The notes under the pieces: generated by a model
Database searches by the model: none
Seen by the model: only the letters and a program-made list of their open reading frames with translations
Told to the model about the DNA's origin: nothing
In this document: positions 1,299-34,506 of the stretch, in pieces
How the letters are laid out: every line of letters begins with the position of its first letter
Numbering within the stretch: the stretch's first letter is position 1
Assembly: GCA_004764695.1 (NCBI GenBank)
Contig: SMSO01000036.1
Span: 2,294,001 to 2,358,000, forward strand
Origin: Schizochytrium sp. TIO01
Taxonomy: Eukaryota; Protista; Bigyra: Labyrinthulomycetes
Direction of reading: 5' to 3'
Length of the DNA: 64,000 bases
Position numbers and translations under genes: made by a program

Positions 1299-3359
1299 TT
1301 AGGTGTACATGACCTTCAAATCAAATCCTGACTTGGCCTTTTTGGAGTCTGTGCGGAAGTAAAGAATCACCTGCTGGGAATATGCAGTGAGCGTGCTCTT
1401 CTTAACTTTGCCTGAGTACTCCTCAACCAGCATAGTGTCAACCTCACCTGCCTGAAGTGAGGCGATATCAGCTAGAGAAGGTGACAGCACCTCATACACT
1501 TCTAGAATATCGACGTTCTTCTGAGTCTCGCCATTTACATACAGGGTAACAACACCATCCTCCGGGGCTTGGATGATCCAGCACTGGTCCATATTCGCGG
1601 CATATGTTTTGCTGTCTGGGTTTGTACCAAGCTCTACCCATTCTCCCTGAGTGTTGAGCTCCACAATCTGGTTTGCATCCGTATCATTGCATTTGTTGGA
1701 CCAAGAGTAAGATGCCAACTTTGGACAGCTGCTTGCTTTGGATACACATGTCCAACTTGCTTCATCAAGGATGTAGTTCTTGTCGCAGCGACAGTATGTC
1801 TTCAAGAACTCGGACTCCTCTTCGTACGTGTAGGTATCTTGAGGATCTGGGAGCGTGATGCACACTCGATTTGCTTTCTTAAAGCAAGAAGTGGAGACTA
1901 CCGAGTCGCTACACTTGGGCTCGCAATCCTCATAGTAGCACTGTGCTAAAATCATCGCATTTGGACACGCAGGATATTCGTCAACGTTGGATGGGATGGT
2001 ACTCAGCGTTGGTGCTGGGGTCGGCTTTGTCGGCCTTGATGTAGGCAAGGGAGTTGGGTTCTTAGTAGGCCTTTCTGTAGGGAAATTCGTTGGTCTTTGG
2101 GTGGGCTCTGGCGTAGGATAATTTGTTGGTTTAAGGGTCGGTGCCATGGTTGGGGATTTGGTAGGCTTGGTGGGTTCCATTGTCGGTGCTAGAGTCGGCT
2201 TAGAAGTTGACGGTGTTGTTGAATCCTCGATCGGACTAGGCGTGGGACTTTCCGTTGGGCTCTCTGAAGTTTCAGCAAGAACGTGATTGTTGCAGTTAGA
2301 GGAGACACGCAAATCAATACAGTACCTTACTGCATAAGTTTTATTAGTCTTTGTTTTCACAGGGTGGTCAGCGAACAGGCGACATAGTCCTGAAGACGTA
2401 GAATCTCCGAAGAAGTTATATGAGAAACAGTAACTACTAGCTTTACATTTGCTCAGACAGGAATCTTCACTAATTCCAGTATAATCCAAATAATCACCTT
2501 CGTAGGTTGTATCGGTAGCGTCTGCTGGATTTTCAAACAAGCATGAACCATAGCCAAGAAGATGGGAGCAAGTTTCTGTAGAAGTACTACGAGGGCTGAC
2601 GGGATACATGCATACAGGAGTTCTCTCTGCAGCATATTCTGACTCGGAGTATGCATTGTCAAGCGCGACGACAGAAATGGCACCACTTGACTTCATCATA
2701 ATTGGATAGTTGTAGAAGCAAGCGCGTAGCTCAGAACCATAAGGCTCATCATCATATGAGGAGGACTTATAGCTGCTGTAGGAGTCTGAGGTTGAAGAGG
2801 TGTACGTGAGAAAGTCGCTAGAGTATCCGTCAGAGACGTAAGAGCCTGACCATGGAGCATAGCCCGTACCATAATCACTCTTTTTACAGCTGCTTCCCCA
2901 ATAGATAGTTACACCAAGGTTATTAGCCAGCTTGGAGGAGAGAAGGACTTTGTCGCTTGTAGGGTCGACGACCTGCTTCACGGGACCAATTTGGTATTTT
3001 CTAGAAGGTTGCCAACCCGTATAAACATCAACACCAGCGGCCACAACGGCCTTCTTCATAGCCTTTACTTGCGCATTGTTACGAAGCACAGCTGGGATGA
3101 TGGCGCGACTGTCGGGGTACTTTCTGGAGCAATATGTTGTGCTCTTATTCTTGGAATCGTAGAATTGGCTTTTGTAGCTAATTTTCTTGTCCAAATCAGC
3201 GAATCCTACACAATATCCTCCATTACTGCTGGTCGACGCAAAGTAGTAGTTCTCCATACAATATGAAGAAGTAGAGCTTCCATGGCTTAGGGTCACCATT
3301 TGGCAGGTTGCCACAATCGCGAGCAGGGCTGCCGCAGAGGCAGGCATTTCCACCTTCAT
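1299..3359 (-). CDS. Secreted lectin-array protein A1 (SP - C-type-lectin-like - PAN/apple - Pro/Thr stalk - TIL-like - CUB), 686 aa
   Basis: Intact ATG ORF with hydrophobic signal peptide. CxxxxxxxxxxxxxxC start, YC...PAVLRNNAQV, YTGW and PVCMY frame a CTL-like fold. PAN motif SEDSCLSKCKASSYCFSYNF; PT repeats; 10-Cys TIL pattern; CUB motifs [17 protein letters not shown] and FRTD..SGF. No TM or GPI tail. Confidence 0.85.
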   Translation of the reverse strand: MKVEMPASAAALLAIVATCQMVTLSHGSSTSSYCMENYYFASTSSNGGYCVGFADLDKKISYKSQFYDSKNKSTTYCSRKYPDSRAIIPAVLRNNAQVKAMKKAVVAAGVDVYTGWQPSRKYQIGPVKQVVDPTSDKVLLSSKLANNLGVTIYWGSSCKKSDYGTGYAPWSGSYVSDGYSSDFLTYTSSTSDSYSSYKSSSYDDEPYGSELRACFYNYPIMMKSSGAISVVALDNAYSESEYAAERTPVCMYPVSPRSTSTETCSHLLGYGSCLFENPADATDTTYEGDYLDYTGISEDSCLSKCKASSYCFSYNFFGDSTSSGLCRLFADHPVKTKTNKTYAVRYCIDLRVSSNCNNHVLAETSESPTESPTPSPIEDSTTPSTSKPTLAPTMEPTKPTKSPTMAPTLKPTNYPTPEPTQRPTNFPTERPTKNPTPLPTSRPTKPTPAPTLSTIPSNVDEYPACPNAMILAQCYYEDCEPKCSDSVVSTSCFKKANRVCITLPDPQDTYTYEEESEFLKTYCRCDKNYILDEASWTCVSKASSCPKLASYSWSNKCNDTDANQIVELNTQGEWVELGTNPDSKTYAANMDQCWIIQAPEDGVVTLYVNGETQKNVDILEVYEVLSPSLADIASLQAGEVDTMLVEEYSGKVKKSTLTAYSQQVILYFRTDSKKAKSGFDLKVMYT
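1514..2071. repeat. ~560-bp near-identical block shared by A1 and A2 (partner 7025..7582)
   Basis: Direct comparison at offset 5511 shows only a handful of mismatches, with sharp edges inside both ORFs. Confidence 0.9.
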
Positions 3360-3408
3360 TTCTGCAGCAAGCCTATGATTAAGCTATCCGCGCAACACTG
3401 CTTTGGAG

Positions 3409-6809: not shown

Positions 6810-8888
6810 TTACGTGTACATGACCTTCAAATCGAATCCCGACTTGGCCATTTTGGGGTTTGTGCGGAAGTAAAGAATCATCTGCTCGGTCCCTCCATGG
6901 ACAGTCACACTTTTAACTTTGCCTGAGTAGACTTGTTTAAGCATAGTCCCAACATCACCTGCCTGAAGTGAGGAGATATCTGCAGGTTCAGGTGAAAGTA
7001 TATCATACACTTCTAGAACGTCAGCGTTCTTCTGAGTCTCGCCATTTACATACAGGGTAACAACACCATCCTCCGGGGCTTGGATGATCCAGCACTGGTC
7101 CATATTCGCGGCATATGTTTTGCTACCTGGGTTTGTACCAAGCTCTACCCATTCTCCCTGAGTGTTGAGCTCCACAATCTGGTTTGCATCCGTATCAGTG
7201 CATTTGTTGGACCAAGAGTAAGATGCCAACTTTGGACAGCTGCTTGATTTGGATACACATGTCCAACTTGCTTCATCAAGGATGTAGTTCTTGTCGCAGC
7301 GACAGTATGTCTTCAAGAACTCGGACTCCTCTTCGTACGTGTAGGTATCTTGAGGATCTGGGAGCGTGATGCACACTTGATTTGCTTTCTTAAAGCAAGA
7401 AGTGGAGACTACTGAGTCGCTACACTTGGGCTCGCAATCCTCATAGTAGCACTGTGCTAAAATCATCGCATTTGGACACGCAGGATATTCGTCAACGTTG
7501 GATGGGATGGTACTCAGCGTTGGTGCTGGGGTCGGCTTTGTCGGCCTTAATGTAGGCAAGGGAGTTGGGTTCTTAGTAGGCCATGGTGTAGGGTTACGTG
7601 TTGGAAATTTGGTAGGTTCGGTGGGCTTCATCGTCGGTGCAATTGTCGGGCGGGGCGTTGGAGCATTTGTAGGATTTGTCGGGCTGGCGGTGGGACTTTT
7701 TGTTGGTGTTTCTGTCGGGTTCGTTGGCTTAGCGGTAGGACTTATTGTTGGACTATTTGTGGGCGGGGCGACAAAGTGGTTGTTGCAGTTAGAGGACACA
7801 CGCAAATCAACACAGTATGCCACTGTGTAAGCGTCGGTGGCCTCAACCACAGAAGGGTGGTCAGGGAACAGACGGCATATTCCAGAAGACGTAGAATCTC
7901 CAAGGAAATTATACGAGAGACAATAGCTTGTAGCTCTGCATTTGCTTAGACAGCTCGTTTCACTAATTCCTGTGTATTCTTGGTAGTCGCCTTCATAGTA
8001 ATTGTAATCATATTCTTTTGGATCTTGATACAAACACACACCATTTGTAATAAGATGTGGGCAATTTTCTAAAGTGCTACGAGGAGTGATAGAATACATG
8101 CACAGAGGCGGTCTCTTTTTAGCATATAACTCCTCAGATTCGTGGTCATCAAGCTCAACAACAGAGATGGTACCATCAGACTTCATGATGATCGGGTAGT
8201 TGTAGTAGCAATCGCGCCATGAAGAATCATACGGGTCAACGTATTCCGGCAATGAACTATAAGTCGGGTGAGCTTTGTAACCACCATAGTAAGAGTACAC
8301 GCGAAAATCAGAAGAGTATTGCTGGTGTGTCTTATAATAATCATCCTTCCAAGGAGCATAGTTACCGCCATAGTAGTGATCTTTAGAACATTCCGTTCCC
8401 CAATAGATGTTGACGCCAAGAAGGTCATTCAGCTCTGAGGAAGTAAGAACAGTTGACTTTACTGGGTCCACAACCTGTGTTATAGGACCAATATTGTAAC
8501 GTCTAGAAGGCTGCCATCCGATAAAGACATCCTTACCGATTGCCGCAACAATCTTTCTCATAAGTTTTACTTGGGCTTTATTGCGAAGTACAGCTGGGAC
8601 AATGCGGCGACTAATGCCTTCATATAAGCCGTCACAATGAACCTTATTGTTCAAAGATGGTCTCCAACTTTTCCTATTATAGAATTGAAGTTTAAAGGTG
8701 ATTTCTTCCTTAAAAGAGTCGGTTAAACCTCCCATGCAATAGCCTCCATCCTCGGTAGTCGACGCAAAATAGTAGCCATCTAAGCAAAAGTCGTCAAGAG
8801 AAGGTTCTGCATGGCTCAGGGTTAACATCTGACACATTAACACAATCGCGGGCACAAAAGCTGCAGACATGGACTTATTCACCTTCAT
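6810..8888 (-). CDS. Secreted lectin-array protein A2, 692 aa
   Basis: Same architecture as A1. TIL and first half of CUB nearly identical to A1; N-terminal half clearly diverged. Confidence 0.85.
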
Positions 8889-11243: not shown

Positions 11244-13316
11244 TTAGAAGTACGAAACTTCAAACCCAAGCCCAGACCTAACTTTGCGATCATCAGAATG
11301 AAAGTAAATCACCATGTCGCGTGACAACGGATCAAGTGTACTTGGCCGCTTTACCTTACCATCATATGTCGCGCGAAGTACAGTCTCGTATTCACCACCA
11401 CGCAAATTAGAAAAAAAGTTTTTCGTGTTCGACACAGTGCTCAGAACATCCCACGCCTCCAGGATATCCTTGTTTGCTTGTGTCGCGCCACCCACCATCT
11501 TAAACATTACAGTCTTGCCTTCCGGAGCACGCACCAGCCAGCATGCATCTTCGTTATTCTCGTACTGCTTGTCTGTCCCATTGTTCGTATCAAGAGTGAC
11601 CCACTCTCCAATCTGACTCAGCTCAACGATATTGTTGGCTTCAGGGTCCAAACATTTGGAAGCCCAATCAAGAGTGGCAGGAGGACATTCCTTCGCTTTC
11701 TTGACGCACTTTTGGGATGCACGGTCGTGAATCCAACCCTGAGGACAGCGACAATACGTGCCAAGAAATGCAGCTTCTTCTTCTTCAGAGTACGACGACT
11801 TGGGATCAGGAAGGTCAATGCAAATGCGGTTGGCATTCTTGGGACACCGCGTAGTGATCTTGTTCTGTCCGCACTGCGGTGAGCAGCTCGGATACCAGCA
11901 TTGCGCAAGTATCAAGTTGTTTGGACATTCTGGGTACGCATCGACATTAAGTGGGATAACAGGCTGTGTTGGTTGTGGAGTAGGTTTTGTAGGCCTTGGT
12001 GTGGGCTCGTTGGTTGGCGTTTTGGTTGGCTTGGGAGTTGGCTCACGTGTTGGTTTGTTCGTAGGTTGTGATGTTGGGCGTTTGGTGGGACGTCCTGTCG
12101 TGGGCTGAGGAGTAGGTTTTTTGGTGGGTACTTTGGTGGGACGCGGGGTTGGCTTTGGCGTGGGCTGGGGAGTAGCTGAAGCCACGACATGTTGATTGCA
12201 TGTAGAGGTAGTTCGCAAATCAACACAAAGTCTCACAGGGTATTTATTGTTGGAAGGCACATCAACTTTGACGGGGTTATTGGCATGGAGCTCACAGACA
12301 CCTTTGGCACCATCTGGCACGGCGTTGGTAGAGTAAAACTCATACGAGCGGCAGTATGCATCTTGAAGACAATTGTTGAAGCACTCAAGCTCAGATACAT
12401 CGTCGTATTTGACAAAGTCGCCATGGTAGTCAGTATTTGTTGCGTCGGTGGGCTTGACGAATCTACAATAGCCATGTGGAGCCATGAGGTTCGGGCATAG
12501 GGCGGTCGTTTCACGTTCAGGTACTGGGTATTTGCAGAATGGGATTCGTCGATGCAGAATGCGTCGCTGGTGTTTGTATCCGTTAAAGTCAGGATGAGCA
12601 TTTATGGTTCCATCTGCCATAATGAGAAGTTGATTGTTTGATTGACATCTTCGATTTATCGAGTAGTCAGAACCGTATGAACTAGTATATGGATTAGTGG
12701 ATTGGGCATTAGATGCATATGGTTTGATCCGAGAGTAATCCTCGTTTGTGTACTGCAGGTAAAAGTCAGTCTCATAATGGCCTGCGTTTGGTTCAGTTGT
12801 GTAGTCATCCCAAGGCTTTCTCCATTCATAGTAGTTGGATTGGTCGCACTCGGGGCCAAAATTTACAGTACCAAGCATACTCGTGAGTTGCTTCGACGTT
12901 TTCCTTAGTTGAGTAGTTGGATTGATGACATTTTTCACTGGACCAATAGTGTAATCAATGGGTTGCCATCCCGTAAATGCAGATGCTGCATTGGATGCTT
13001 TTAGAGCAAGTGTCATAGCTTTGACTTCTGCCTTATTTGTGAGTATAGCAGGTTGCACTGATGTATTGGGAAATTTTCGTTCGCAGTAAGTAGTATGCGT
13101 TTTATCAGAAGGATAGAACTGCCATGTGTAGCGACTCTTTGTAGTGGAGACTGCACCAATGCATACGCCTCCATTGAAGTAAAACCCCTCAACACATCGT
13201 GTGCTGGTGCTGCTGGCTGTTATAAGTGAGAAGCATTGCAAAAGCAACAAGAATAGAGCGAACATGGTGCCAAAACTAAGCAAAGGCGACCTCCAACTCA
13301 TTGGAGTACCAAACAT
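11244..13316 (-). CDS. Secreted lectin-array protein B1
   Basis: The ORF track starts at a non-ATG codon (13352). First ATG is 13316 (MFGTPMSWR), alternative 13301. Signal peptide followed by CTL-like/PAN/PT/TIL/CUB motifs. Confidence 0.85.
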   Translation of the reverse strand: MFGTPMSWRSPLLSFGTMFALFLLLLQCFSLITASSTSTRCVEGFYFNGGVCIGAVSTTKSRYTWQFYPSDKTHTTYCERKFPNTSVQPAILTNKAEVKAMTLALKASNAASAFTGWQPIDYTIGPVKNVINPTTQLRKTSKQLTSMLGTVNFGPECDQSNYYEWRKPWDDYTTEPNAGHYETDFYLQYTNEDYSRIKPYASNAQSTNPYTSSYGSDYSINRRCQSNNQLLIMADGTINAHPDFNGYKHQRRILHRRIPFCKYPVPERETTALCPNLMAPHGYCRFVKPTDATNTDYHGDFVKYDDVSELECFNNCLQDAYCRSYEFYSTNAVPDGAKGVCELHANNPVKVDVPSNNKYPVRLCVDLRTTSTCNQHVVASATPQPTPKPTPRPTKVPTKKPTPQPTTGRPTKRPTSQPTNKPTREPTPKPTKTPTNEPTPRPTKPTPQPTQPVIPLNVDAYPECPNNLILAQCWYPSCSPQCGQNKITTRCPKNANRICIDLPDPKSSYSEEEEAAFLGTYCRCPQGWIHDRASQKCVKKAKECPPATLDWASKCLDPEANNIVELSQIGEWVTLDTNNGTDKQYENNEDACWLVRAPEGKTVMFKMVGGATQANKDILEAWDVLSTVSNTKNFFSNLRGGEYETVLRATYDGKVKRPSTLDPLSRDMVIYFHSDDRKVRSGLGFEVSYF

Positions 13317-14836
13317 GAATCTAGTCGTCCTTGTTTTGATTTTGCTGATCACAGCTGATGCTTATACATCGGAAAAGAATATGATATTAGTGAGGTTAAT
13401 ATGGAGACTGAGGATTTAGCGATCAGCTCCAGAATTTGATGGTCAGGATATGTTGGATGATTCGGCCCTATTTTTGAAAATTATAATGATGGCATACAGA
13501 CATAATAATATATTACTAAGTCTAATAAATAGAATCGTAGTCTGGTTTGATGAGTAAGATAAAGTTAGTTAGACCTCTCGGCACATGAACAACACTCTAG
13601 CATGATATTACCTAATACATTAGCAGGTGCTATTCATTTGAGGGTTTGTCAGCCGTGATTAGGAAGAAGATGTCCCCGTGTCGTTCAGGTTACCAAGTTC
13701 ACGCTATTTATCTATAATGGAAATACAATAGGTATTATATACACATATACTAATAGTGCTGGAATTCAGGAGAAACAATATTAGTGGTATGGAAGGATCG
13801 GAATCCTTTAGTTATTCTGACACAGCAGCAGTAGTAGTGTACACGACTTTGTGATCTCGTGTTAATCCAAATGGTCCTATTATATATTGTGTGTTCTAGT
13901 ATGGACGGTGGCCATTCTGAGGCACAACTAGTATAGGCCTGGTTGTCTGTCACTCTCACTTGCCAGGAGGTGACGCTCGTCGATCCTTTCGCATTGATGA
14001 AAGTTAGAATATCCCTGTGGTGCTAATACAGCTGCTCTTTTACCATTTGTTGTGTCATCCATGGATTTATTACACTCAAACTATGAGGTTGATAGGTGTT
14101 GCAGTAGTGAAGGGATTGCTTCACCTGAACTCAAGTCTTCGTAGTAGGAATATATAGCAAGACCCGGCAAGGACCTACATGATGAGTGTCCTATATATTT
14201 TTAATTATTTTTTTAATACGCTTTTATTAAAGGAAAATATTGATAATAATATCAATGTTCATCTTTCAAGATTGCACAATTCATGGGTTTGGCTGAGCTT
14301 GCGTCTCTGCATATGTGATCACCTTAGGTTAGCCAACATATTACCTTCAATCCCTCCGTAGACAGTGAATAATTTGATAATTGAAGTTATTATTTTTTTA
14401 AATATTATTTTTTACTAAAACATATTGGCTTCTCCTCACTTTGTTTTTCTATATTGATTACAACATACCGAGCTTCTTACGCAGCTCTGGGCTCTCAAGA
14501 ACTAATTTTCCATATTTCTCTTGCAGTCTTGACCTTGGACTAGTCTGAAGGCTCCTGCGACTTGGGTTGTAAAGATACATACATTTATGAGACATCCTTT
14601 TTTAGCCCTGAACTGAAACTGGCGACGCAGACCATAAACAAAGCATAAATAGTAATAAAGCAAAATTATACATTTTCCTTGTAGGTAGTTGATTTTTATT
14701 TTATTCAAATTTCCATTAAAAATTAATCGAATCCTGTTAGGTAGGTATCTGTACACCTACCACTAGTGGTTCCCGGATTTAGACTTTCAAAAACAAATTA
14801 TTATTTAAAAAATTAGAATTAAAATTAAAATATTTG

Positions 14837-15921: not shown

Positions 15922-15930
15922 TAGTGGCAC

Positions 15931-15957
15931 TTTTTTTTTTTTTTTTTTTTTTTTTTT
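15931..15957. repeat. Poly(T)27 tract
   Basis: Direct reading. Confidence 0.95.
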
Positions 15958-18318: not shown

Positions 18319-18379
18319 GAAGAGAATATATTATTTGTTTTAATTTTTAGTTGTTTTTAACTTTCAATTGTTTTAACAC

Positions 18380-19260: not shown

Positions 19261-20399
19261 ACCCGTGCAATCTCTTTTGTCGATGTTATTGTTATCTCTA
19301 ATATCGCTATTATAGTAATAGATTCTTGTTTTTTGTTTGTTTGATGTTGTATTTTGTTATCGTTGGTTGACTAAAATTGCCTCTAGACTATCTTCGCACC
19401 ATTACAACTTTGAATTAATTGTGATGAATGTTAGTGTCATGAAATAATAAGAGAGTTCTAGACTCAGTTGAGCAAGTCCAACTATCTAAAGAAGGCTTAC
19501 GTGATGAATACCTTCATCTCTATTATCTTCTGACATGAGGCTTGCCGCTCTTTGAAACTGGAAACTGCATTGTAGCCCCGTAGCCTGGAGTTTTTTATTC
19601 AGAGTATATCTTCTTTAAAAAAATCAAAAATAGCACTACTGGTATGCATACTTTATTAGCACTGAAAACTGGTTTTGCCTTAGCTAGTCAGATTATTCAC
19701 TTCATTCGTAATCTGTATATTTTTATTACTTGGATTTAAATATTAATTAAAATCAATATTGTTATTTATGAACGATTTAATTCAGAAAAGCCTTTTGCAA
19801 CTCGGATTGAAAGTACCTTATCGGCTTGGCAGTAGACTGAACATTATATTACCTTCAAGTGCTCAACCACCTGAAAGAATTCAGATGTCTTCCGGCAACC
19901 ACGATTTACAATATTCTCCCTGATATTTCTTGAATGGAGACAATAATTATTTGATGAACATTAAAAGGACTATTACCACCACCACCAACCCATTTATTCT
20001 TACTGATAATCAAAATAAATCACACAATGGAACCGCCCGGACACCTGAGGGAATGTAAGTTTTGGGCTTCGCTTGATAAGTTTAGTTGTAGGCAGCGGTA
20101 TTCACTATTTATGTACGATTAAACTGATTTTTTATTCAGAGTCTGAAATCAAGCCAGCTTGTATTGGCACTAACAACTGATTAATCATTGCAAATCTCAT
20201 TGCCAGTCATAGGCGTCTGCAAAATTTGAGCACAACATGAGGATAAGACCACTCCAAATGCCTCTATTATCTAGTTAAAGAGCTATATTGCTCTTTTCTG
20301 AGAGCCATGTTATCGCACATGAAAATGCACAAAGTCCATCAACGCGTGCACACTTTAAAATATTTAAAAACTCAAAACTTATTCTTAATAAAATGTTTG

Positions 20400-20434
<35 letters not shown>
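20400..20434. repeat. Poly(A)35 tract (shorter and interrupted in the duplicate at ~25245-25265)
   Basis: Direct reading. Confidence 0.95.
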
Positions 20435-20440
<6 letters not shown>

Positions 20441-21096
20441 GAGGCAGACACAAGTTTGCGCGTTTCTTCTTCTTTATTTAATATATATATTTTACACAAC
20501 TCCGCATCTATCCCAATACAAATAAATCACTGGCCAACCATAGATGAAGACTGTAGTGTCATTGTCACGGTACTCTAAACGACCAAACGTAAGTCGGAAA
20601 AAAGTTGAGTGTTAAATACGACGAGGCTATGCATCGGCTACCATAGCAGCAGGATATGGATTCCTATTCAAAATAGCCTAGGTGACGATGAAACTCTAAT
20701 CAGTAGTCATATAAGTATTCAGAAATAAGTGTCCCTACAAAATGAGCACAACAATAGCCCGATTCTTCCTGATCATGACTGACCAGTCCTAAAATATTAA
20801 AATAAGGCAACTTTTCTATTTTTTTTAATTGAATGTTTTTAATTAATTAGCACCATTAATATATCTACAGATCGGCAATATAGAGAACGTAGTATTGCCT
20901 TATTAAGTTTTAATTCTTAGATAACGCTTTATTCAAGATATTTTTATTTATTTATTTATTGAATATCTATTTGCAGTTCCTTAATAGACTACAACTTAGA
21001 AGTTTGGTATTACAAACCTGAATTATCTGGAAAGAGAAGCTATAATTCAGACAGCAAAACCGAAACAAGGACAGTACCATTTAGATTTGTACTTCA

Positions 21097-23163
21097 ATGA
21101 GTTGGAGGGTACCTTCTCATAATTTCGTCTCCATGTTTGCTCTATTGCTATTACTTTTGCAATGCTTCTCACTTACAATAGCCAGCAGCACCAGTACACG
21201 ATGTGTTGAGGGGTTTTACTTCAATGGAGGCGTCTGCATTGGTGCAGTCTCAACTACAAAGAGTCGCTACAAATGGCAATTCTATCCTTCTGATAAAACA
21301 CATACTACTTACTGCGAACGAAAATTTCCCAATACCTTAGTTCAACCTGCTGTACTCACGAATAAGGCAGAGGTCAAAGCCATGACACTTGCCCTAAAAG
21401 CCTCAAAAGCAGCGTCGGCATTTACTGGATGGCAACCCATTGATTACACTATTGGTCCAGTAAAAAATATCATCAATCCAACTACTCAACAAAGAAAAAC
21501 GTCGAAGCAACTCACGAGTATGCTTGGTACTGTAAATTTTGGCCCCGAGTGCGACCAATCCAACTACTATGAATGGAGAAAGCCTTGGGATGACTACACA
21601 ACTGAACCAAACGAAGGCCATTATGAGACTGACTTTTACCTGCAGTACACAAACGAGGATTACTCTACGATCAAACCATATGCATCTGTATATTCTAAAG
21701 ATCAATCTGCTGATCATTATAGTAGTCCATACGGCTCCGGTTATTACTCCTTATTTCGAGGATGCCAATCAAACAATCAACTTCTCATTATGGCAGATGG
21801 AACCATCACTGCCCACGTTGCTGGTGCCCCAAACCTCAGGCGGCGTATTTTGAAACGACGAATCCCATTCTGCAAATACCCAGTACCTGAACGTGAAACG
21901 ACCGCCCTATGCCCTAACCTCATGGCTCCGCATGGCTATTGTAGATTCGTCAAGCCCACCGACGCAACAAATACTGACTACCATGGCGACTTTGTCAAAT
22001 ACGACGATGTATCTGAGCTTGAGTGCTTCAACAATTGTCTTCAAGATGCATACTGCCGCTCGTATGAGTTTTACTCTACCAACGCCGTGCCAGATGGTGC
22101 CAAAGGTGTCTGTGAGCTCCATGCCAATAACCCCGTCAAAGTTGATGTGCCTTCCAACAATAAATATCCTGTGAGACTTTGTGTTGACTTGCGAACTACC
22201 TCTACATGCAATCAACATATCGTGGCTTCAGCTACTCCCCAGCCCACGCCAAAGCCAACCCCGCGTCCCACCAAAGTGCCCACCAAAAAACCTACTCCTC
22301 AGCCCACGACAGGACGTCCCACCAAACGCCCGACACCACAACCTACGAACAAACCAACACGTGAGCCAACTTCCAAGCCAACCAAAACGCCAACCAACGA
22401 GCCCACACCAAGGCCTACAAAACCTACTCCACAACCAACACAGCCTGTTATCCCACTTAATGTCGATGCGTACCCAGAATGTCCAAACAACTTGATACTT
22501 GCGCAATGCTGGTATCCGAGCTGCTCACCGCAGTGCGGACAGAACAAGATCACTACGCGGTGTCCCAAGAATGCCAACCGCATTTGCATTGACCTTCCTG
22601 ATCCCAAGTCGTCGTACTCTGAAGAAGAAGAAGCTGCATTTCTTGGCACGTATTGTCGCTGTCCTCAGGGTTGGATTCACGACCGTGCATCCCAAAAGTG
22701 CGTCAAGAAAGCGAAGGAATGTCCTCCTGCCACTCTTGATTGGGCTTCCAAATGTTTGGACCCTGAAGCCAACAATATCGTTGAGCTGAGTCAGATTGGA
22801 GAGTGGGTCACTCTTGATACGAACAATGGGACAGACAAGCAGTACGAGAATAACGAAGATGCATGCTGGCTGGTGCGTGCTCCGAAAGGCAAGACTGTAA
22901 TGTTTAAGGTGATGGGTGGCGCGACACAAGCAAACAAGGATATCCTGGAGGTGTGGGATGTTCTAAGCACAGTGTCAAGCACGAAAAACTTTTTCTCTAA
23001 TTTGCGTGGTGGTGAATACGAGACTGTACTCCGCGCGACATATGATGGTAAGGTGAAGACTCCGAATACACTTGACCCGTTGTCACGCGACATGGTGATT
23101 CATTTTCATTCTGATGATCGCAAAGTTAGCTCTGGGCTCGATTTTAGAGTTACATACTACTAA
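21097..23163 (+). CDS. Secreted lectin-array protein B3, 688 aa
   Basis: Intact ORF; tandem copy whose stop lies 4845 bp after the B2 stop. Confidence 0.85.
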
Positions 23164-23224
23164 GAAGAGAATATATTATTTGTTTTAATTTTTAGTTGTT
23201 TTTAACTTTCAATTGTTTTAAGAC

Positions 23225-24105
23225 GGACTTGGCGAATGAAGAATACCCTGAAATCAGCAGATTTGGGCATGGCTGAAACCCCTATATGACATGGAGCAGG
23301 TTAATCGATTGGCCTCACCGAGTTTGCCCCGAGAAAAGACGTTTGTCGGTGTCTTCGTGGTTGAAAAGTCAAACAGAGACCTCGGGCGCGCTGCTTAAGA
23401 TGGACAGGTAGCTGGCACATAGGATATACTACAGCATGGTTCTTACAAGCGCCTGTAAAGCCTTTATATGCCGATGGAATCGTTGTGGTTTGTGCTCACG
23501 TTGTGAGTGTGAAAGAAGGGACAGATGAACAGCGCAAGGTCCACAAGGTCGGTAAACCTAAGAGAGTGAGGAAGATGAATGTTCAACGTCAAGCCTTCGG
23601 GAAGGCATGCAAGTCGATTCGATGGCAATAGAAATTTCTGACGCTCCACTGCTGCGAAAAGCTCGCAGACTTATTCGTGCTAAGCCTGCTGTTGTTGGCA
23701 CGCCTGGCAAAGATGCAAATAGTCCCTTGGATGGAGATGCTGGGTTAGAACCAAACCTTTCAGAAAATACTAATGAAAACGCCGAAAATATTGATGACCG
23801 AAGATCTAATGCAAAGGAACCAGGTTCTGAGGACATGCACCTTCGACAAACCCAAACTAAAACTAAGGATGCGTCACCCGCCATCCCATAGGAAATTGAG
23901 TTTGCCAACATTTGTCAATTCAACCCCCCAATTACAATAGTCGATGATCTATTTACTGCTTTCCAGCTAACTCTGTACATTGGTACACTGATCTCACGAT
24001 TTGCAGAACGGAGCTCATATGGACTTGAATCGTTCTCAACTGTGCAGCAATCTGCAATAAAGAGTGTCTTCACAACAATAGTCACCAATGCCGCGCGCAT
24101 CATTC
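23225..24105 (+). pseudogene. Degenerate SWIM/MULE-like fragment, copy 2
   Basis: Duplicate of 18380-19260 with the same frameshift; the first Cys has become Ser (TSACKAF). Confidence 0.38.
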
Positions 24106-25964
24106 ACCCATCCAATCTCTTTTGTCGATGTTATTGTTATCTCTAATATCGCTATTATAGTAACAGATTCTTGTTTTTTGTTTGTTTGTTGTTGTATTTT
24201 CTCATCGTTGGTTGACTAAAATTGCCTCTAGACTATCTTCGCACCATTACAACTTTGAATTCATTGTGATGAATGTTAGTGTCATGAAATAAGAAGAGAG
24301 TTCTAGACTCAGTTGAGCAAGTCCAACTATCTAAAGAAGGCTTACGTGATGAATACCTTCATCTCTATTATCTTCTGACATGAGGCTTGCCGCTCTTTGA
24401 AACTGGAAACTGCATTGTAGCCCCGTAGCCTGGAGTTTTTATTCAGACTATATCTTCTTTAAAAAAATAAAAAATAGCACTACTGGTATGCATACTTTAT
24501 TAGCACTGAAAACTTGCTTTTGCTTAAGCTAGTCAGATTATTCACTTCATTCGTAATCTGTATATTTTTATTACTTGGATTTAAATTTTAATTAAAATCA
24601 ATATTGTTATTTATGAACGAGTTAATTCAGAAAAGCCTTTTACAACTCGGATTGAAAGTACCTTATCGGCTTGGCAGTAGACTGAACATTATATTGCCTT
24701 CAAGTGCTCAACCACCTGAAAGAATTCAGATGTCTTCCGGCAACCACGATTTACAATATTCTCCCTGATATTTCTTGAATGGAGACAATAATTATTTGAT
24801 GAACATTAAAAGGACTATTACCACCACCAACACATTTATTCTTACTGATAATCAAAATCGAAATCACACAATGGAACTGCCCGGACACCTGAGGGAATGT
24901 AAGTTTTGGGCTTCGCTTTATAAATTTAGTTGTAGGCAGCGGTATTCACTATTTATGGACGATTAAACTGATTTTTTATTCAGAGTCTGAAATCAAGCCA
25001 GCTTGTATTGGCACTAACAACTGATTAATCATTGCAAATCTCATTGCCAGTCATAGGCGTCTGCAAAATTTGAGCACAACATGAGGATAGGATCACTCCA
25101 AATGCCTCTATTATCTAGTTAAAGAGCTATATTGCTCTTTTCTGAGAGCCATTTTATCGCACATGAAAATGCACAAAGTCCATCAACGCATGCACACTTT
25201 AAAATATTTAAAAACTCAAAACTTATTCTTAATAAAATGTTTTGAAAAAAGATGAAAAAAAAAAAGAAAGAGAAAGAGGCAGACACAAGTTTGCGCGTTT
25301 CTTCTTCTTTATTTAATTACATATATATATATTTACACAACTCCGCATCTTTCCCAATACAAATAAATCACTGGCCAACAATAGATGAAGACTGTAGTAT
25401 CATTGTCACGGGATTCTAAACGACCACACCTAAGTTGGAGTGTTCAATACGACGAGGCTAGGCATCTGCTATCCTAGCAACAGAATATGGATTCCTATTC
25501 AAAATAGCCTAGGTGAGAATGGAACTCCAGTCAGTAGTTGTATAAGTATTCAGAAGTGAAGATTGGTGTCCCTACAAAATGTGCAAAAAAAAGCCCGATT
25601 CTTCCTGATCATGACTGACCAGTCCTAAAATATTTATTATTATTTTTTTAATTAAAAAAAAAGGCAACCATTTATTTTTAATTAAACACGCCATAAGAAA
25701 CATTCTCCAAATCCGCAACATAGTGAACTTAGTATTACTTTTTAAGTTGAATTTTTTAATAAACGCTATATTCATATTTATTTTTTTAATTAAATATCTA
25801 TTTCCAGTGTTTCGATAAACTGCAACATAGAAGTTTGGTATTACAAACCTGAATTATCTGAAAAGAGAAGCAATAATCAGACAGTAAAACCGAAATAAGG
25901 AGAATTGGGATTCATGACTTGTACTTCAATAGGTTAGAGATCATCTTTCTTAAGCCTTGGAACC

Positions 25965-27989
25965 ATGTTTTCTCTCTTCCTGTTGCTTTTACAATGGTTC
26001 TCACTTGCAACAGCCAGCAGCACCAGCACACGATGTGTTGAGGGGTTTTACTTTAATGAAGGCGTCTGCATTGGTGCAGTCTCAACTACAAAGAGTCGCT
26101 ACAAATGGCAATTCTATCCTTCTGATAAAATGCATACTACTTACTGCGAACGCAAATTCCCCAACACATCAGTTCAACCTGCTATACTCACAAATAAGGC
26201 AGAGGTCAAAGCCATGACACTTGCCCTAAAAGCCTCAAAAGCAGCGTCGGCATTTACTGGATGGCAACCCATTGATTACACTATTGGTCCAGTAAAAAAT
26301 GTCATCAATCCAACCACCAAAGAGACAAAAACAGCAAATCAACTCAAGGGTATGCTTGGTCCTGTTGATTTTGGCCCCAAGTGCGAAAGATCTCATTACT
26401 ATGATTGGGCGAAGCCATGGGGTGGTGGTGCACCATATGGAGATCATTACAACGGTGATTACACGACAGACTTCAGTATCTACACGGAGGAGGGTTATTC
26501 CACAGTTCGCCCTTACGAGTCATCTGAACGACCTGAAGGCTATTCAGGCTATTCTCGTGACTACGACTACTCCGTGTATCGAAATTGTCAATCAAACAAC
26601 AATTTACTAATCATGGCAGATGGAACCATCACTGCAAAAGCTGACATTAAAGGCCCAAGCCTCAGGCGGCGTATTTTGAAACGACGAATCCCATTCTGCA
26701 AATACCCAGTACCTGAACGTGAAACGACCGCCCTATGCCCTAACCTCATGGCTCCACATGGCTATTGTAGATTCGTCAAGCCCACCGACGCAACAAATAC
26801 TGACTACCATGGCGACTTTGTCAAATACGACGATGTATCTGAGCTTGAGTGCTTCAACAATTGTCTTCAAGATGCATACTGCCGCTCGTATGAGTTTTAC
26901 TCTACCAACGCCGTGCCAGATGGTGCCAAAGGTGTCTGTGAGCTCCATGCCAATAACCCCGTCAAAGTTGATGTGCCTTCCAACAATAAATACCCTGTGA
27001 GACTTTGTGTTGATTTGCGAACTACCTCTACATGCAATCAACATATCGTGGCTTCAGCTACTCCCCAGCCCACGCCAAAGCCAACCCCGCGTCCCACCAA
27101 AGTACCGACCAAAAAACCTACTCCTCAGCCCACGACAGGACGTCCCACCAAACGCCCAACACCACAACCTACGAACAAACCAACACGTGAGCCAACTCCC
27201 AAGCCAACCAAAACGCCAACCAACGAGCCCACACCAAGGCCTACAAAACCTACTCCACAACCAACACAGCCTGTTATCCCACTTAATGTCGATGCATACC
27301 CAGAATGTCCAAACAACTTGATACTTGCGCAATGCTGGTATCCGAGCTGCTCACCGCAGTGCGGACAGAACAAGATCACTACGCGGTGTCCCAAGAATGC
27401 CAACCGCATTTGCATTGACCTTCCTGATCCCAAGTCGTCGTACTCTGAAGAAGAAGAAGCTGCATTTCTTGGCACGTATTGTCGCTGTCCTCAGGGTTGG
27501 ATTCACGACCGTGCATCCCAGAAATGCGTCAAGAAAGCGAAGGAATGTCCTCCTGCCACTCTTGATTGGGCTTCCAAATGTTTGGACCCTGAAGCCAACA
27601 ATATCGTTGAGCTGAGTCAGATTGGAGAGTGGGTCACTCTTGATACGAACAATGGGACAGACAAGCAGTACGAGAATAACGAAGATGCATGCTGGCTGGT
27701 GCGTGCTCCGGAAGGCAAGACTGTAATGTTTAAGATGGTGGGTGGCGCGACACAAGCAAACAAGGATATCCTGGAGGCGTGGGATGTTCTAAGCACAGTG
27801 TCAAGCACGAAAAACTTTTTCTCTAATTTGCGTGGTGGTGAATACGAGACTGTACTTCGCGCGACATATGATGGTAAGGTGAAGAGTCCGAATACACTTG
27901 ACCCGTTGTCACGCGACATGGTGATTCATTTTCATTCTGATGATCTCAAAGTTAGCTCCGGGCTCGATTTTAGAGTTACATACTACTAA
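25965..27989 (+). CDS. Secreted lectin-array protein B4, 674 aa (N-terminally shortened start)
   Basis: Intact from the third ancestral Met ([10 protein letters not shown]). The upstream MSWR-equivalent codons read ATA GGT TAG. Confidence 0.8.
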
Positions 27990-30471: not shown

Positions 30472-31434
30472 ATGGCCCGCGGGACGCCTGTATCCGCTGC
30501 GAAGTCTTCGAAGAAGCGTAAGACGCCCGCCAAGAGCTCTGGTGCGGCTGATGATGAAGAACTGGTGGATGTGAAGAAGGCCAAAACCCCCGTGAGCAAG
30601 AAATCCGCCACGGCCAAGAAAACCCCTGTTAAGAAAAAGGTTGTGGATCCGCTCGACGCCCTTCTTGCGAAACATGATTTTCTGGAACGCGTCTCCACAG
30701 AGTTTGGTGACAAAATTAAGTGCAATGTGACTGACCACGAAATGCCGCTCAAGGCGGAGGTGGTGGAGAAGCACCTCGAATCCAAGAGGTTCAAGCAGGC
30801 CCGCGAGAACTGGTGGTCCGAAGATCTCGCAGAGAAGTACGCCCCAGAAATTGTCCAGCACAAGCACAACGAGAAGAAGCTCTACTGTACCATTACAGAA
30901 CAGTCCCTCAACAAGATCCCTGCTGAGGTCGAGGCGCACGTGAACGGCAAGCGCTTCAAAAACCTGAAGAAGGTCAAGGAGGCCAAGGAGGCCAAGGCAG
31001 CAGCAGTGGAGGCAAAACGCAAGGAGAAGATCGCCAAGCGTATTGCTGCTCGCAAGGCAGCAGCAGCAGCCAAGGCTGGGACTACAGAGGAGAGTGCAGA
31101 GGAAGAGCAGAAGCCTAAAGCCCACGCCGTCGATGACTTCTTGGACCAATTGGAAGACTCCGATGAGGAGATGGACCTCGATGAGTCCGAGGAAGAAGAT
31201 GCTGAGGAAGACGAGGAGGATGATGAGGAGGAAGAGGAACCCACTCCACCTCCAAAGAAGAAGCGTCAAGCTACTTCAAAGAACGCTAGCGACAACAAGA
31301 CTAAGAAGAGCAACGCCAAACCTGCAGCCACCCCCAGCAAGAAGAAGCAGGCTACCAAGGAGACCAAACCCCAGTCCGCGAAGAAGACAACACCCAAAGG
31401 TAGCGCTAAGAAGAAGATTAATAAGAAGAAGTAA
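30472..31434 (+). CDS. SURF2: Surfeit locus protein 2-like, 320 aa
   Basis: Twin motifs KIKCNVTDHEMP...HLESKRF and KLYCTITEQSLNKIPAEVEAHVNGKRF; acidic tract and Lys-rich tails; strong GC3 codon bias. Confidence 0.85.
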   Translation: MARGTPVSAAKSSKKRKTPAKSSGAADDEELVDVKKAKTPVSKKSATAKKTPVKKKVVDPLDALLAKHDFLERVSTEFGDKIKCNVTDHEMPLKAEVVEKHLESKRFKQARENWWSEDLAEKYAPEIVQHKHNEKKLYCTITEQSLNKIPAEVEAHVNGKRFKNLKKVKEAKEAKAAAVEAKRKEKIAKRIAARKAAAAAKAGTTEESAEEEQKPKAHAVDDFLDQLEDSDEEMDLDESEEEDAEEDEEDDEEEEEPTPPPKKKRQATSKNASDNKTKKSNAKPAATPSKKKQATKETKPQSAKKTTPKGSAKKKINKKK

Positions 31435-33054
31435 AGACCAAACGTATATTTCCCTTTGCCTTGTGTAATTGCTGGTTCAAAGCTGTATTTGTATATATCT
31501 TGTCCAATTCACTATACACGCTACAGCTGCATGGATTTTTCGATATGACATGGTGCAAATTTCGTGCTGACAGGCTGAGAAATTAGATGATTAATTCAAT
31601 CAGCTCAGTTGCCTCTTCTAATTTATGCAGGAACACTGCTCAATACGTCATTCTTTTCTTTCGAATGACTTGATTGATTCTACTTGGCCAATCATTAATT
31701 TTTAGCAACTCAATATGTAAGACTGCTTTGAAGCAAGGACGTTTCAATAAATGGCCAACACGTGTAAAAACTATAATACTCAGCGCTGCATCAATTTGTC
31801 ATTGCCATAACTCCTGTGTGCCCTCTTTCTCTTTTAATAACTTAGTACGAAGGTGGGTAGTGCTTATAATGTTAAGTAGTTGTTATAAAATGCTCTCGTG
31901 TGTTAATTAACACGCCAACAATTCTCGCATTAACTTACTTTTTTCCTTCAACTGTCTAAGTATGCCCGCGCTTAACATTCAGTGAACAGGACTGATGTGT
32001 ATGGTTTTCGTTTCTTGCACTTCATGTCTATCTATCTATCTATCTATCTGTATATATATAGAAAGAGAAAGAGAAAGAGAGAAAGAAAGGTTTTCGCGAG
32101 TCGATATCTCGCTATTGAGAGTCACAGTTTGCTTGGCTAACCAGTTTTGTCTTCTGAAAACTAGCATTGGAGGGTACAAGTTCGATTAAGCCTTGCCATC
32201 TATGATGCTATCATTGTCACAGTAAAAGAATAGAAAATCACAACGCTGTAGCAAACACAATTGGGGTTTCATAGGCTCAAAGTATTTCACCTCTCCGCAG
32301 CTTTTGATATTTTTGTTTTCATTAATAAAAACTCACATGCTGTTTTTCTACTAAATAGCTCTTAATGTTTGGATGTTCCCTTCTGGACCCCCCAGAGGGA
32401 GGGGCGATTGCATAGTATAAAAGTCAGGATGCTGAGAGGTATCTATTGATCTGACGGGATGCAGAAAATACAGTTCCTTAAGAGAACTTTTAATAAAAAC
32501 CACTACGGAGGGACTATTCCTTGGTCGGAAAAGCGCGTCTCTGGTATGAGGTAGTCCTGTTTGCTTTCAATCTACACTATTAATCCGATATGCTGAACGT
32601 GGCAAACTCTATTCTTCTCGTCTTTCTCAACGGGGGCTTTCAGTCCCAATTGGAGCTGAAAGCCCCCAAAATCTCTCACTACTACGTCCCAGCTCAGCAT
32701 TCATATCAACCAGCAACTGTTAACATGGTCCTTTCCTCAAGTTTGGCCATCGATGAATCCGTTAAGATAGAGGTTTTTTAATTAAAATTTCCTCTTATTT
32801 TCTTCACTTCATATACAACTTGAAGGCGATTCTTGAAAGACAAAATATTCTAACCCTCATATGATAAAATCAATGAGATCAAGCAATTTAAAAAAGTAGA
32901 AGGAGAAATGATAAACCAGAATAAAGTCAATTAAGGAACCAGTCCTAAGTCAGTCAAGAGGAGACCCAAAAGTAAATCCAGCGAATACCAAAACCAATCC
33001 CCGAAGCAATTCCAAAACGCAGCTTTCGGTGATAACGCTGTGTTTAAGTCTATA

Positions 33055-34506
33055 ATGTCGGCTATCAAGACAACAATGCGCTTGTTATGGCTGCAGGTTC
33101 TTCTCTGTATGTCTCATCTTCATGGCGCAAAAGCAAGCCCGCAAAATTACTGTGTTGATAATTATTACTTCAACGATGGCTATTGTGTTGGACCTGCAAG
33201 CATGGAACTTATCTCTTTCAAGAGTCAGTTCTACCCATTGAGGCGAAAAGGAGCTCTGCATAATTCTACATTTTGCACACGCGCATACCCTCGTTCATCT
33301 GTAATTGAACCTGCTGTTGTTAGAAACAAAGCACAAGTGGAGGCTTTGAGACTTGCTTTGCGTGGTGAAAAGATTCGCATGGCCTATGTTGGATGGAAAC
33401 CATTTAACTACACTCTCGGACCTGTCACCAATGTAATTGATCTCACAACCAAGACAGAAGTAAGTATTCCAGAGCTGCGGAAAATGATTGGTAGTGTGTT
33501 TGCAGGACGCAAATGTGAATCTGGAGACAAAGAATATACCTCAACAAGCTACGACACTGAATCCTACTCCTCCAGCTCAAATGGATATACCTCTAGCTAT
33601 ACCAGCTCAAATGAATATACCTCTAGCTATACCAGCTCTAAAGACGACGATGAATACACCAGCTCTAAAGACGACGACGAATACACTAGCTCTAAAGATG
33701 GTGATTATACATCTAGTTCCATTGATGATGATAGTATTACCGACATGAATACACCTGCTGATCTCGGATATTCGTCTGAGACAATCGACTATTCTACGGA
33801 GTATTCCTCGTACACCACGACAGGCATGAATGTGTCACACCCAGACTATGATCCAAGTGACGACTATAACACTGAGTATTCATCCGGTACTTTTCTTTAC
33901 TCGCTTTATGCTTCAGAGGACAATGCATGTTTTTACAATTGGCCGCTCATTATGAAACGCTCTGGAATGGTCTCTGTGCTAGACCTTGCCCGAGTCAAGC
34001 GCGAATTTACGAAGTCGCAGGAGCTCGTTCCATTTTGCATGTACGAAATTGAAGAGCGCCCAGAGTCTACCGAGTGCGCCAACCTTGTCACTATGGACGG
34101 TGTATGCCAATATGCCAACCCCACAGACGACGCGATAATTGGCGATGGTCAGTTCCAAGTGATGGATAGTGTGGTTGAGTTTAGCTGCTTCCAGGCTTGC
34201 CGTGATGATAGCTTTTGTCTATCGTACCAATTTACTACAGAAATTGGGCAAGTTCTTGGTACGTGTAGGATGTATGCTGCTCATCCAGTGCGCACTGTGG
34301 AAAGCGAAAGTTCTAATGAAACAAACGTGTGCGTTGATTTACGTAATTCTTCCACAGAATCCTGCAATGATTACATGCCTAGTCTCCCAGAACTACCCGC
34401 CGAAACGCACAATACTGCTCCCTCAGATAATATTGTCCTGAAAACAAGTATGACTCCAACTGCTGCTCCAACTTCCCTCCCCACTCCGTTGCTTCGCAGG
34501 GTTTGA
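33055..34506 (+). CDS. Truncated lectin-array paralog C (SP - CTL-like with expanded S/T/Y/D loop - PAN; no TIL/CUB)
   Basis: First ATG is 33055 (track start 33040 is GTG). Shares YCVDNYYFNDGYCVG, PAVVRNKAQV, VGWKPFNYTLGPV, CFYNWPLIM, PFCMY and CVDLR with A/B. Stops at the start of the PT stalk. Confidence 0.8.
   Translation: MSAIKTTMRLLWLQVLLCMSHLHGAKASPQNYCVDNYYFNDGYCVGPASMELISFKSQFYPLRRKGALHNSTFCTRAYPRSSVIEPAVVRNKAQVEALRLALRGEKIRMAYVGWKPFNYTLGPVTNVIDLTTKTEVSIPELRKMIGSVFAGRKCESGDKEYTSTSYDTESYSSSSNGYTSSYTSSNEYTSSYTSSKDDDEYTSSKDDDEYTSSKDGDYTSSSIDDDSITDMNTPADLGYSSETIDYSTEYSSYTTTGMNVSHPDYDPSDDYNTEYSSGTFLYSLYASEDNACFYNWPLIMKRSGMVSVLDLARVKREFTKSQELVPFCMYEIEERPESTECANLVTMDGVCQYANPTDDAIIGDGQFQVMDSVVEFSCFQACRDDSFCLSYQFTTEIGQVLGTCRMYAAHPVRTVESESSNETNVCVDLRNSSTESCNDYMPSLPELPAETHNTAPSDNIVLKTSMTPTAAPTSLPTPLLRRV
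33572..33718 (+). repeat. Coding minisatellites (30-nt x2, 27-nt x~2.5) encoding YTSSYTSS / YTSSKDDDE in paralog C
   Basis: Direct reading. Confidence 0.9.

Follow-up and report, generated by a model that had tools for sequence, protein, structure and literature searches.

A multigene family with predicted C-type-lectin-like heads, an adhesin-like architecture and concerted evolution in the thraustochytrid Schizochytrium sp. TIO01

In the fungal adhesins Epa, Flo and Als an N-terminal lectin-type head, of PA14 or Ig-like fold, stands on a Ser/Thr/Pro-rich glycosylated stalk that leads to a wall anchor, and the genes form tandem families with fast-diverging heads and with recombination or conversion among paralogs. 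Secreted adhesion proteins built on PAN/apple domains are described from the stramenopile-alveolate-rhizarian (SAR) lineage, for instance oomycete CBEL and apicomplexan MIC4 and SML-2, and the C-type lectin-like domain (CTLD) is known from proteins such as SP-A, SP-D, conglutinin, tetranectin, Reg/lithostathine and ovocleidin-17. Thraustochytrids are major marine decomposers and industrial producers of docosahexaenoic acid, and their surface proteins are little known. Here we analyse a stretch of 64,000 nucleotides from Schizochytrium sp. TIO01 (contig SMSO01000036.1, positions 2,294,001 to 2,358,000 of the forward strand; hereafter the window), which holds an array of seven genes for putatively secreted proteins with a predicted CTLD-like head. 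An earlier, sequence-only reading of the window, made blind to its origin, correctly placed it in a unicellular eukaryote and took the array for a diversified recognition repertoire with an antibody-like variable/constant organisation. We find instead that the variable/constant layout of the four B genes of the array is mainly a product of concerted evolution, and we lean, with modest confidence, towards the family being secreted, stalked, lectin-headed adhesin or matrix glycoproteins with a sticky loop constrained in its composition.

The layout is easiest to follow in B2 (16234-18318, plus strand, 694 aa), which served as the reference copy for the structural work. Its CTLD-like head (16348-17043, aa 39-270) contains six invariant cysteines, a Tyr/Ser/Asp-rich loop of 72 codons including both bounding cysteines (16702-16917) and a second variable patch of 11 codons (16960-16992), which lies after the motif ADGTI and before RRRIL, where the sequence-only reading had seen it. 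A homogenised constant tract (16995-18318) then runs from PAN through CUB, and comprises the PAN domain (about 17062-17361), a Pro/Thr stalk (about 17371-17604), a TIL-like module (about 17605-17910) and the CUB domain (about 17911-18315). B3 (21097-23163, plus strand, 688 aa; loop 21550-21765, 72 codons) and B4 (25965-27989, plus strand, 674 aa; loop 26382-26588, 69 codons) follow, and B1 (11244-13352; loop 12645-12848, 68 codons) lies on the minus strand, its open reading frame (ORF) being listed from a GTG with a likely ATG at about 13316-13265. The counterparts of the constant tract are 11244-12567 in B1, 21840-23163 in B3 and about 26665-27989 in B4, and the 3' 1.3 kb of B1 is an inverted repeat of its counterpart in B2 to B4, 97% complementary.

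Measured in 100-nt windows along the B repeat unit (B2 coordinates), identity between the units is 71-98% over the first 400 nt of the gene, 42-53% in the loop and 97-100% from about 17000 to 18215. By the Nei-Gojobori method, the B genes are separated by a synonymous divergence (dS) of 0-0.05 in PAN and of 0.03-0.08 in the C-terminal part; in the head scaffold it is 0.17-0.69, with a ratio of nonsynonymous to synonymous divergence (dN/dS) of 0.09-0.34; and in the loop it is saturated, with dN of 0.52-0.70 and dN/dS of 0.27-0.60, nowhere above 1. The same gradient appears when only columns with the same residue are considered, a count that lessens the effect of alignment error: codons differ at 50-60% of such columns within the loop, at 10-30% of those in the scaffold and at 0-3% of those in PAN. 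The transition/transversion ratio likewise declines from 2.78 in the C-terminal part through 1.44 in the scaffold to 0.71 in the loop. The constant part of the B genes has been recently homogenised by gene conversion; stronger purifying selection alone would not account for it, because this part is almost without synonymous differences and because the inverted copy B1 shares the tract. The converted part has a somewhat raised GC content at third codon positions (0.47-0.50 vs 0.24-0.42), which hints weakly at biased conversion.

The head, by contrast with this constant part, retains older sequence, and the loop is its oldest or fastest portion. The B3 head is a mosaic, B4-like at first, then B1-like through the first half of the loop (where B1 and B3 are 96-97% identical) and then B4-like again, and mosaicism of the heads is significant (max-chi2 breakpoints, permutation p <= 0.001). 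A segment of near-zero dS together with mosaic breakpoints identifies concerted evolution of one part of a gene, and both are present here. In older pairs that are less homogenised than the B genes, namely A1/A2 in the window and F1/F2 on another contig, loop dN exceeds the dN of the structured domains by a factor of only about 1.6-3.7 (A1/A2: loop 0.66, scaffold 0.42, PAN 0.30; F1/F2: 0.46 vs 0.26 and 0.12), and the closest pair of relatives in Hondaea has 60% identity in the loop vs 77-93% elsewhere. The conserved non-coding spacer that the sequence-only reading had remarked upon is real in the two tandem intervals, from B2 to B3 (18319-20350, plus strand, no notable ORF) and from B3 to B4 (about 23164-25195), which are mostly 93-100% identical over 18315-20350 and drop to 59-92% nearer the promoter; it is confined to these two, the flanks of B1 and B4 being unrelated. 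We propose that gene conversion, inverted copies included, would keep the PAN-to-CUB part and the tandem spacers almost identical, that the head-coding 5' part would be left as a mosaic of older segments, and that the loop would have escaped homogenisation longest, its turnover being due to substitutions, to slippage of repeats and now and then to the replacement of short tracts.

Two homopolymer runs lie upstream of B genes, one of 27 T at 15931-15957, some 280 nt upstream of B2, and one of 35 A at 20400-20434 in the spacer, some 660 nt upstream of B3, where the identity between units begins to fall.

Full-length members share one order of parts: a putative signal peptide, the CTLD-like head, a PAN/apple domain, a Pro/Thr stalk, a ten-cysteine TIL-like module and a C-terminal CUB domain. 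In Pfam, PAN_1 scores close to its cut-off and CUB slightly below its own, PT repeats are recognised, and the first ~230 residues have no match. The head and PAN of B2 were modelled with AlphaFold from a 14-row family alignment and compared with 48,161 representatives of the PDB (VIA-align); outside the loop the confidence of the model (predicted local distance difference test, pLDDT) is ~80-96. All matches to model residues 1-232 are CTLDs, the best being SP-A (1r13; Z 9.5, root-mean-square deviation 2.9 A, 122 aligned of 145 residues), with SP-D, conglutinin, CL-K1, tetranectin and many more behind it. The top Foldseek matches are also all CTLDs, with target-length-normalised TM scores of 0.54-0.67, but with E values of only ~1e-2, and 26 of 30 matches among the ESM-Atlas features belong to Lectin_C clusters. 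Pfam Lectin_C (PF00059) gave no match at E <= 10 in three heads, profile searches of the PDB, whether made with the head or the C-terminal part, returned no CTLD and nothing meaningful, and the EPN/QPD and WND calcium/sugar motifs were not seen at the corresponding places of a 12-member alignment read by eye. As modelled, then, the head has the C-type-lectin-like fold that the sequence-only reading had surmised when it named AlphaFold and Foldseek as the check, in a highly divergent version of the long form.

Behind the head, the domain list of that reading needed both correction and trimming. The PAN/apple domain directly after the head had been missed: model residues 239-338 match PAN/apple domains exclusively, with Z of 8.3-8.5 (plasminogen, the N domain of HGF, the PAN of a plant S-domain receptor), and PAN_1 scores 22.0-22.1 bits in B1-B3 against a cut-off of 21.4, the other members lying just below it. 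The mucin-like Pro/Thr stalk is present as described. The base had been called TIL-CUB, and here the CUB half is clear, since the last 135 residues match the CUB of neuropilin best (Z 14.1) and 22 CUB chains in all at Z >= 10.9 (neuropilin, PCPE, TSG-6, C1s and MASP at 13-14), ahead of a first non-CUB match at Z 7.5; Pfam CUB itself gives 14.8-19.5 bits, the cut-off being 21.4. The TIL half stays below threshold: in three of four members PF01826 reaches 18.2-19.0 bits, where 24.5 would be needed, and its match is split by an acidic insert. Ten cysteines are present, and the module is modelled at pLDDT under 50. Gene C lacks both the TIL-like module and CUB. All members start with a hydrophobic signal-like segment and none has a hydrophobic C-terminal tail, a transmembrane segment or a glycosylphosphatidylinositol (GPI) signal.

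A script that locates the cysteines flanking the Tyr-rich stretch gave, in all seven genes, exactly the loop coordinates and lengths first reported from the letters, and all seven ORFs are intact and intronless. Besides the B loops these are 2718-2888 (57 codons) in A1 (1299-3359, minus strand, 686 aa, all six parts present), 8208-8390 (61 codons) in A2 (6810-8888, minus strand, 692 aa, architecture as A1) and 33514-33930 (139 codons) in gene C (33040-34506, plus strand, likely ATG 33055), which consists of head, PAN and a short Pro/Thr tail only and whose loop contains 27- and 30-nt tandem repeats at 33572-33698. Between the bounding cysteines lie 55-137 residues. Tyr, Ser, Asp and Gly together make up 41-68% of the loops vs 20-34% of the remaining head, and Tyr alone 11-23% vs 5-9%; the loops are net acidic, poor in hydrophobic residues and almost free of N-glycosylation sites. 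This composition and the bounding cysteines are kept in the 12 paralogs and in five Hondaea copies. The loops of B2, B3 and B4 had been called barely alignable, which is too strong, for their protein identity is 38-42% vs 20.8 +/- 3.6% for shuffled loops and the Tyr and Pro-Trp anchors align. Composition and a few such anchors persist in both genera while synonymous change is saturated, and the loop thus has the look of a low-complexity element with a function.

The position of the loop in the fold can be read from the predicted model. The six invariant cysteines of the head are a hairpin pair (C3, C14), one in the predicted alpha1 (C40), one that opens the loop (C119), one at the start of beta3 (C190) and one in beta5 (C227), positions that would fit a long-form CTLD. 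Of the canonical pairs C0-C0', C1-C4 and C2-C3, the partner of the beta3 cysteine (canonical C3) is absent from the family, and by elimination the C119-C190 pair would close the loop. Most likely, then, the long-loop region ends in an excursion closed by this disulfide, directly ahead of beta3, which agrees with the placement proposed earlier, and the second patch, to judge from the order of secondary structure, would be the connection after beta4. In the B2 model pLDDT is 23-44 in the loop (residues 123-188) and under 50 in the second patch (211-219), and the loop is thus probably disordered, at odds with the structured surface, comparable to an antibody complementarity-determining region, that the sequence-only reading had envisaged.

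That the copies are real and that their loops are stable at the consensus level is seen in independent data, with the proviso that contigs drop rare variants. In each of four runs, from four studies, the contigs have a single version of the B2 loop region (16521-16947, 0-2 differences) and a single version of the B3 loop region (21439-21795, 0-3 differences). Of the 40 other letters listed for the run contigs, 30 agree with the paralogous unit; both units therefore exist in the data, and the differences reflect contig collapse, not strain variation. An apparent strain divergence of ~2% in the spacer was dropped as mostly such collapse, and with it the notion that strains differ less in the loop than in the spacer; contig joints at 21046->16228 and 21554->16942, considered as rearrangements, are most simply explained by B4 and B1. 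In the near-identical pair D1/D2 just outside the window (dS 0.03-0.07) the 79 loop codons differ by a single substitution and the indel of a single codon, vs 13 differences in 139 scaffold codons, and the substitution spectrum shows no base-specific bias of the kind that would sign hypermutation.

One probable RNA run, whose RNA status was guessed, has contigs that cover both the B2 and B3 genes plus 18318-19660 and leave 16000-16196 and 19743-20924 uncovered, which suggests that B2 and B3 are transcribed. MMETSP transcripts include B2-like, B4-like and E copies, distinct for the B2-like and B4-like genes. The RNA-covered spacer after B2 (18319-19660, matching 23164-24500) contains no notable ORF, and its identity with the spacer after B3 is 94-100%; this ~1.3 kb could be a long 3' untranslated region or a non-coding transcript.

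Strains were compared on protein sequences only. B2 differs from its MMETSP counterpart (P0001) at 9 of 71 loop positions and at 7 of 586 elsewhere (Fisher p = 8e-6), and B4 from P0003, likewise from MMETSP, at 3 of 67 in the loop plus three in the second patch, with C-terminal changes towards B2/B3 residues. Nothing differs in the loop of E (0/124; one change elsewhere) against P0008, found in JGI/IMG, Logan and MMETSP, or in that of C (0/137; one elsewhere) against P0007 from Logan. The neighbouring genes F1 and F2 were compared with P0009 and P0015 from Logan: F1 differs at 32 of 77 loop positions, 8 of 122 in the scaffold and 2 of 358 in the rest (loop vs 10/501 elsewhere, Fisher p = 8e-23), and F2 at one loop position and none elsewhere (1/597 in total). 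P0009 and P0015 are each on a 15,781-nt contig, and we therefore take P0009 as the F1 allele adjoining the F2 allele. The F1 loop has a perfect triple repeat of EGDYTTDQS, which P0009 lacks. With the two sources mixed, heterogeneity of loop divergence across genes has p about 1e-29. Loop divergence is episodic and uneven, which is not what a fast clock running at one rate would give; it would agree with the replacement of short tracts by those of a divergent allele or paralog, and likewise with selection on some loops.

The mildest way to dispose of the array would be to regard the copies as assembly or haplotype artefacts, the possibility by which the sequence-only reading itself might have fallen. 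Only the high similarity of the 3' halves speaks for it, and we regard it as scarcely credible, given the distinct B2 and B3 loop contigs in four runs of four studies, the paralogous origin of 30 of 40 letters, the distinct B2-like and B4-like transcripts and a comparable tandem set in Hondaea. Targeted hypermutation or somatic diversification of the loop, by a diversity-generating retroelement (DGR) or an AID-like enzyme, is very improbable too: all that speaks for it is how sharply divergence peaks locally and how far the F1 allele has diverged, and it must contend with the D1/D2 loop changes being fewer than the scaffold changes, with single identical B2 and B3 loops in contigs of independent runs (contigs drop rare variants), with the unbiased substitution spectrum and with C and E loops that are identical between strains. 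Alternatively, the family might be a germline-encoded, diversified recognition repertoire in which diversifying or balancing selection acts on a ligand face made up of the loop and second patch, with segmental conversion among paralogs and alleles shuffling the variants on a constant stalk and base, its targets being prey, substrate, virus or self/non-self. Much of what was found would suit this: the predicted CTLD fold with both variable elements around beta3-beta5, divergence that is highest at the loop and decays on either side as around a selected target, the mosaic heads, the concentration of strain differences in the loops of F1 and B2, a second patch in which nonsynonymous reaches or exceeds synonymous divergence in four of six pairs, and several members that appear to be expressed together; patchy, extreme allelic differences and a sharp conversion boundary shared among genes are also expected around a selected target. 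Yet the positive selection that a dN/dS comparison across paralogs was to reveal did not show in the loop, where the ratio nowhere exceeds 1 and dS is saturated, the loop is modelled as disordered and is of low complexity, in C and F1 carrying tandem repeats, no difference between sources separates the loops of C or of E and those of D1/D2 are nearly identical, each dataset holds one fixed B2 and one fixed B3 loop, no ligand is identified, and the genome-wide six-frame search revealed a repertoire of just 12 genes with no archive of silent cassettes. We consider such a repertoire unlikely, and the antibody-like diversification first proposed is not supported. In its strong form, a small germline CTLD receptor repertoire in which balancing or diversifying selection would keep loop and patch varied, short-tract conversion between paralogs and alleles would reshuffle them and the homogenised stalk and base would serve as the constant region, it is more doubtful still; if true, it would constitute an innate, CTLD-based counterpart of variable-receptor systems, serving substrate, microbe, virus or self/non-self recognition.

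A contrary view is that the variation is functionally meaningless, the loop being a dispensable, disordered, linker-like insert that slippage and indels have rendered too divergent for homologous conversion and that therefore drifts where the rest is homogenised. The saturated dS and transition/transversion ratio of the loop, its indels and in-frame tandem repeats, its low pLDDT and the fall of conversion-tract edges at the most divergent DNA are all in keeping with this neutral by-product. Against it, composition, acidic charge, the cysteine pair and the Tyr and Pro-Trp anchors are kept in 12 paralogs and five Hondaea copies, B loops share ~40% identity vs 21% when shuffled, and dN/dS below 1 denotes constraint; we think this improbable as well. 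The adhesin or matrix reading, which we favour, would make of the loop a sticky element that adheres multivalently to substrates or matrix and whose Tyr residues may be modified or cross-linked, and not a structured antigen-binding surface; the genome has one Pfam tyrosinase match, with no link to the family. Several observations weigh against this reading. A purely relaxed loop explains poorly why F1 should differ at 32/77 loop positions beside 1/597 in F2 and 10/501 in the rest of F1. In the second patch (nonsynonymous proportion pN 0.26-0.59, synonymous pS 0.16-0.68 among B pairs) pN exceeds pS in four of six pairs, with pN/pS of ~0.8-2.7 over 11 codons that afford no statistical power, and the sharp conversion boundary at the head/PAN junction of all four B genes could be maintained by selection. 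The disorder of the loop rests on AlphaFold confidence from a shallow alignment of 14 rows, and positions conserved family-wide within it (Tyr anchors, Pro-Trp, YS.DF..YT) indicate that it may be partly structured. Finally, no experiment or proteome entry places the family at the cell surface or in adhesion, and its members appear to lack any transmembrane or GPI signal that would account for surface anchoring.

Seven genes, the array size first given, are real and only part of the whole. A six-frame search of the assembly (64 Mb) found twelve family members, and the local cluster comprises nine genes, five on the minus strand and then four on the plus strand, as D1 and D2 lie just upstream of the window (G000:C35:2288262-2293406; L005, L006). 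The D1/D2 heads carry an extra Cys-containing insert (GKGCTYNDCYES...). E is a single copy on the same contig, ~0.3 Mb away, and F1 and F2 (L011:1492-3213 and L012:1417-3210; G000:C6:1.46 Mb) are without the TIL-like module, their stalk running straight into CUB. The array is set among ordinary genes: a SURF2 homologue (30472-31434, plus strand; Pfam E 7.5e-30) sits inside it between B4 and C, and beyond C follow genes for an inositol monophosphatase (38612-39646) and for a PAK-type kinase (40462-41787) that has a p21-binding domain. Four genes elsewhere in the genome have canonical Pfam Lectin_C domains (G000:C34:629162, C30:7639075, C33:2390486 and C36:3631699), and one of the four sits in an open frame of 4400 aa.

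The family is lineage-specific, found only in Aurantiochytrium and Hondaea. Searching 1.84 billion protein representatives with the head profile gave eight matches, six of which are family members and two probably low-complexity sequences rather than relatives, and metagenome scans with the family alignment and with one member (P0005) found none. Named relatives exist only in Hondaea fermentalgiana, as four consecutive records (FCC1311_069922 to _069952), one of which fuses two copies and so raises the tandem set to at least five; they are annotated as hypothetical, Apple-domain or CUB-domain only, and UniRef names the homologue a CUB domain-containing protein. One Hondaea protein (P0006, GBG30773.1, 1208 aa) has a fucosyltransferase-like N-terminus fused to two family copies, and is probably a merged annotation of three adjacent genes. 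The nearest transcripts are those of MMETSP0958, from a strain close to, and not identical with, that of the window; the headers of its proteins (P0002, P0004) carry TAXON_ID 87120, a fungus (Rhizopogon), which on our own reading is probably a slip for 87102, Aurantiochytrium limacinum. Full-text literature searches found no description of the family. A 'micronemal adhesin' candidate from the settlement proteome of A. limacinum (A0A6S8AHQ2; PMC12221091) was considered and is not a member, its sequence being unrelated.

With regard to known systems, DGR proteins (Mtd, TvpA) and, in their variable/constant layout, antibodies and variable lymphocyte receptors resemble the family in displaying variation on a constant scaffold, with a CTL-type fold or otherwise. 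Unlike them, the family shows variation that is germline and paralogous among 12 genes, with no diversification machinery or somatic variation detected, and its variable element is a long low-complexity loop rather than a set of defined solvent-exposed positions. Tyr-rich cross-linking or adhesive proteins (GAM56/82 of the apicomplexan oocyst wall, the CUB proteins of the sea-urchin fertilisation envelope, mussel foot proteins) are extracellular, of low complexity and constrained in composition, some with CUB; their likeness to the loop is no more than a lead, and dityrosine, 3,4-dihydroxyphenylalanine and sulfation are without evidence in the family. The PAN adhesins CBEL, MIC4 and SML-2 are closer in lineage and, with the stalked fungal adhesins, are those that the family would most resemble in its working, and SML-2 and AMA4 are among the structural matches of the family's PAN, but those adhesins consist of PAN repeats (with CBM1 in CBEL) and have neither CTLD head nor Tyr-rich loop, stalk or CUB.

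To canonical CTLDs the family is joined by its predicted fold (Z 9.5 over ~122 aligned residues), by the N-terminal hairpin cysteine pair and the alpha1 and beta5 cysteines, by an IGW motif where those have WIGL, and by variable elements in the long-loop/beta3-beta5 region, the ligand face of known CTLDs. It departs from them in lacking a Pfam Lectin_C match and, as read by eye, the EPN/QPD or WND motifs, and in lacking the C2-C3 partner, in whose stead a new cysteine would close a 55-137-residue insert modelled as disordered. A predicted CTLD with a giant Cys-closed, Tyr-rich insert is unusual, and so is a putative CTLD-PAN-TIL-CUB set of animal style in a stramenopile, this combination being one usually discussed for the animal extracellular matrix.

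The fungal adhesins are probably the best analogy for how the family might work. Like Epa, Flo and Als, its members would place an N-terminal lectin-type head on a Pro/Thr-rich stalk, and they share the tandem arrangement, the fast-diverging heads and the recombination among paralogs; unlike them, they have a predicted CTLD as head, a TIL-like and CUB base instead of a wall anchor, no GPI signal and a locus among housekeeping genes. On this comparison the family would be candidates for substrate attachment, or for cell-wall or ectoplasmic-net proteins. We would describe it as a lectin-headed, adhesin-like multigene family under concerted evolution, and one that offers a clean natural example of gene conversion generating an apparent variable/constant layout.

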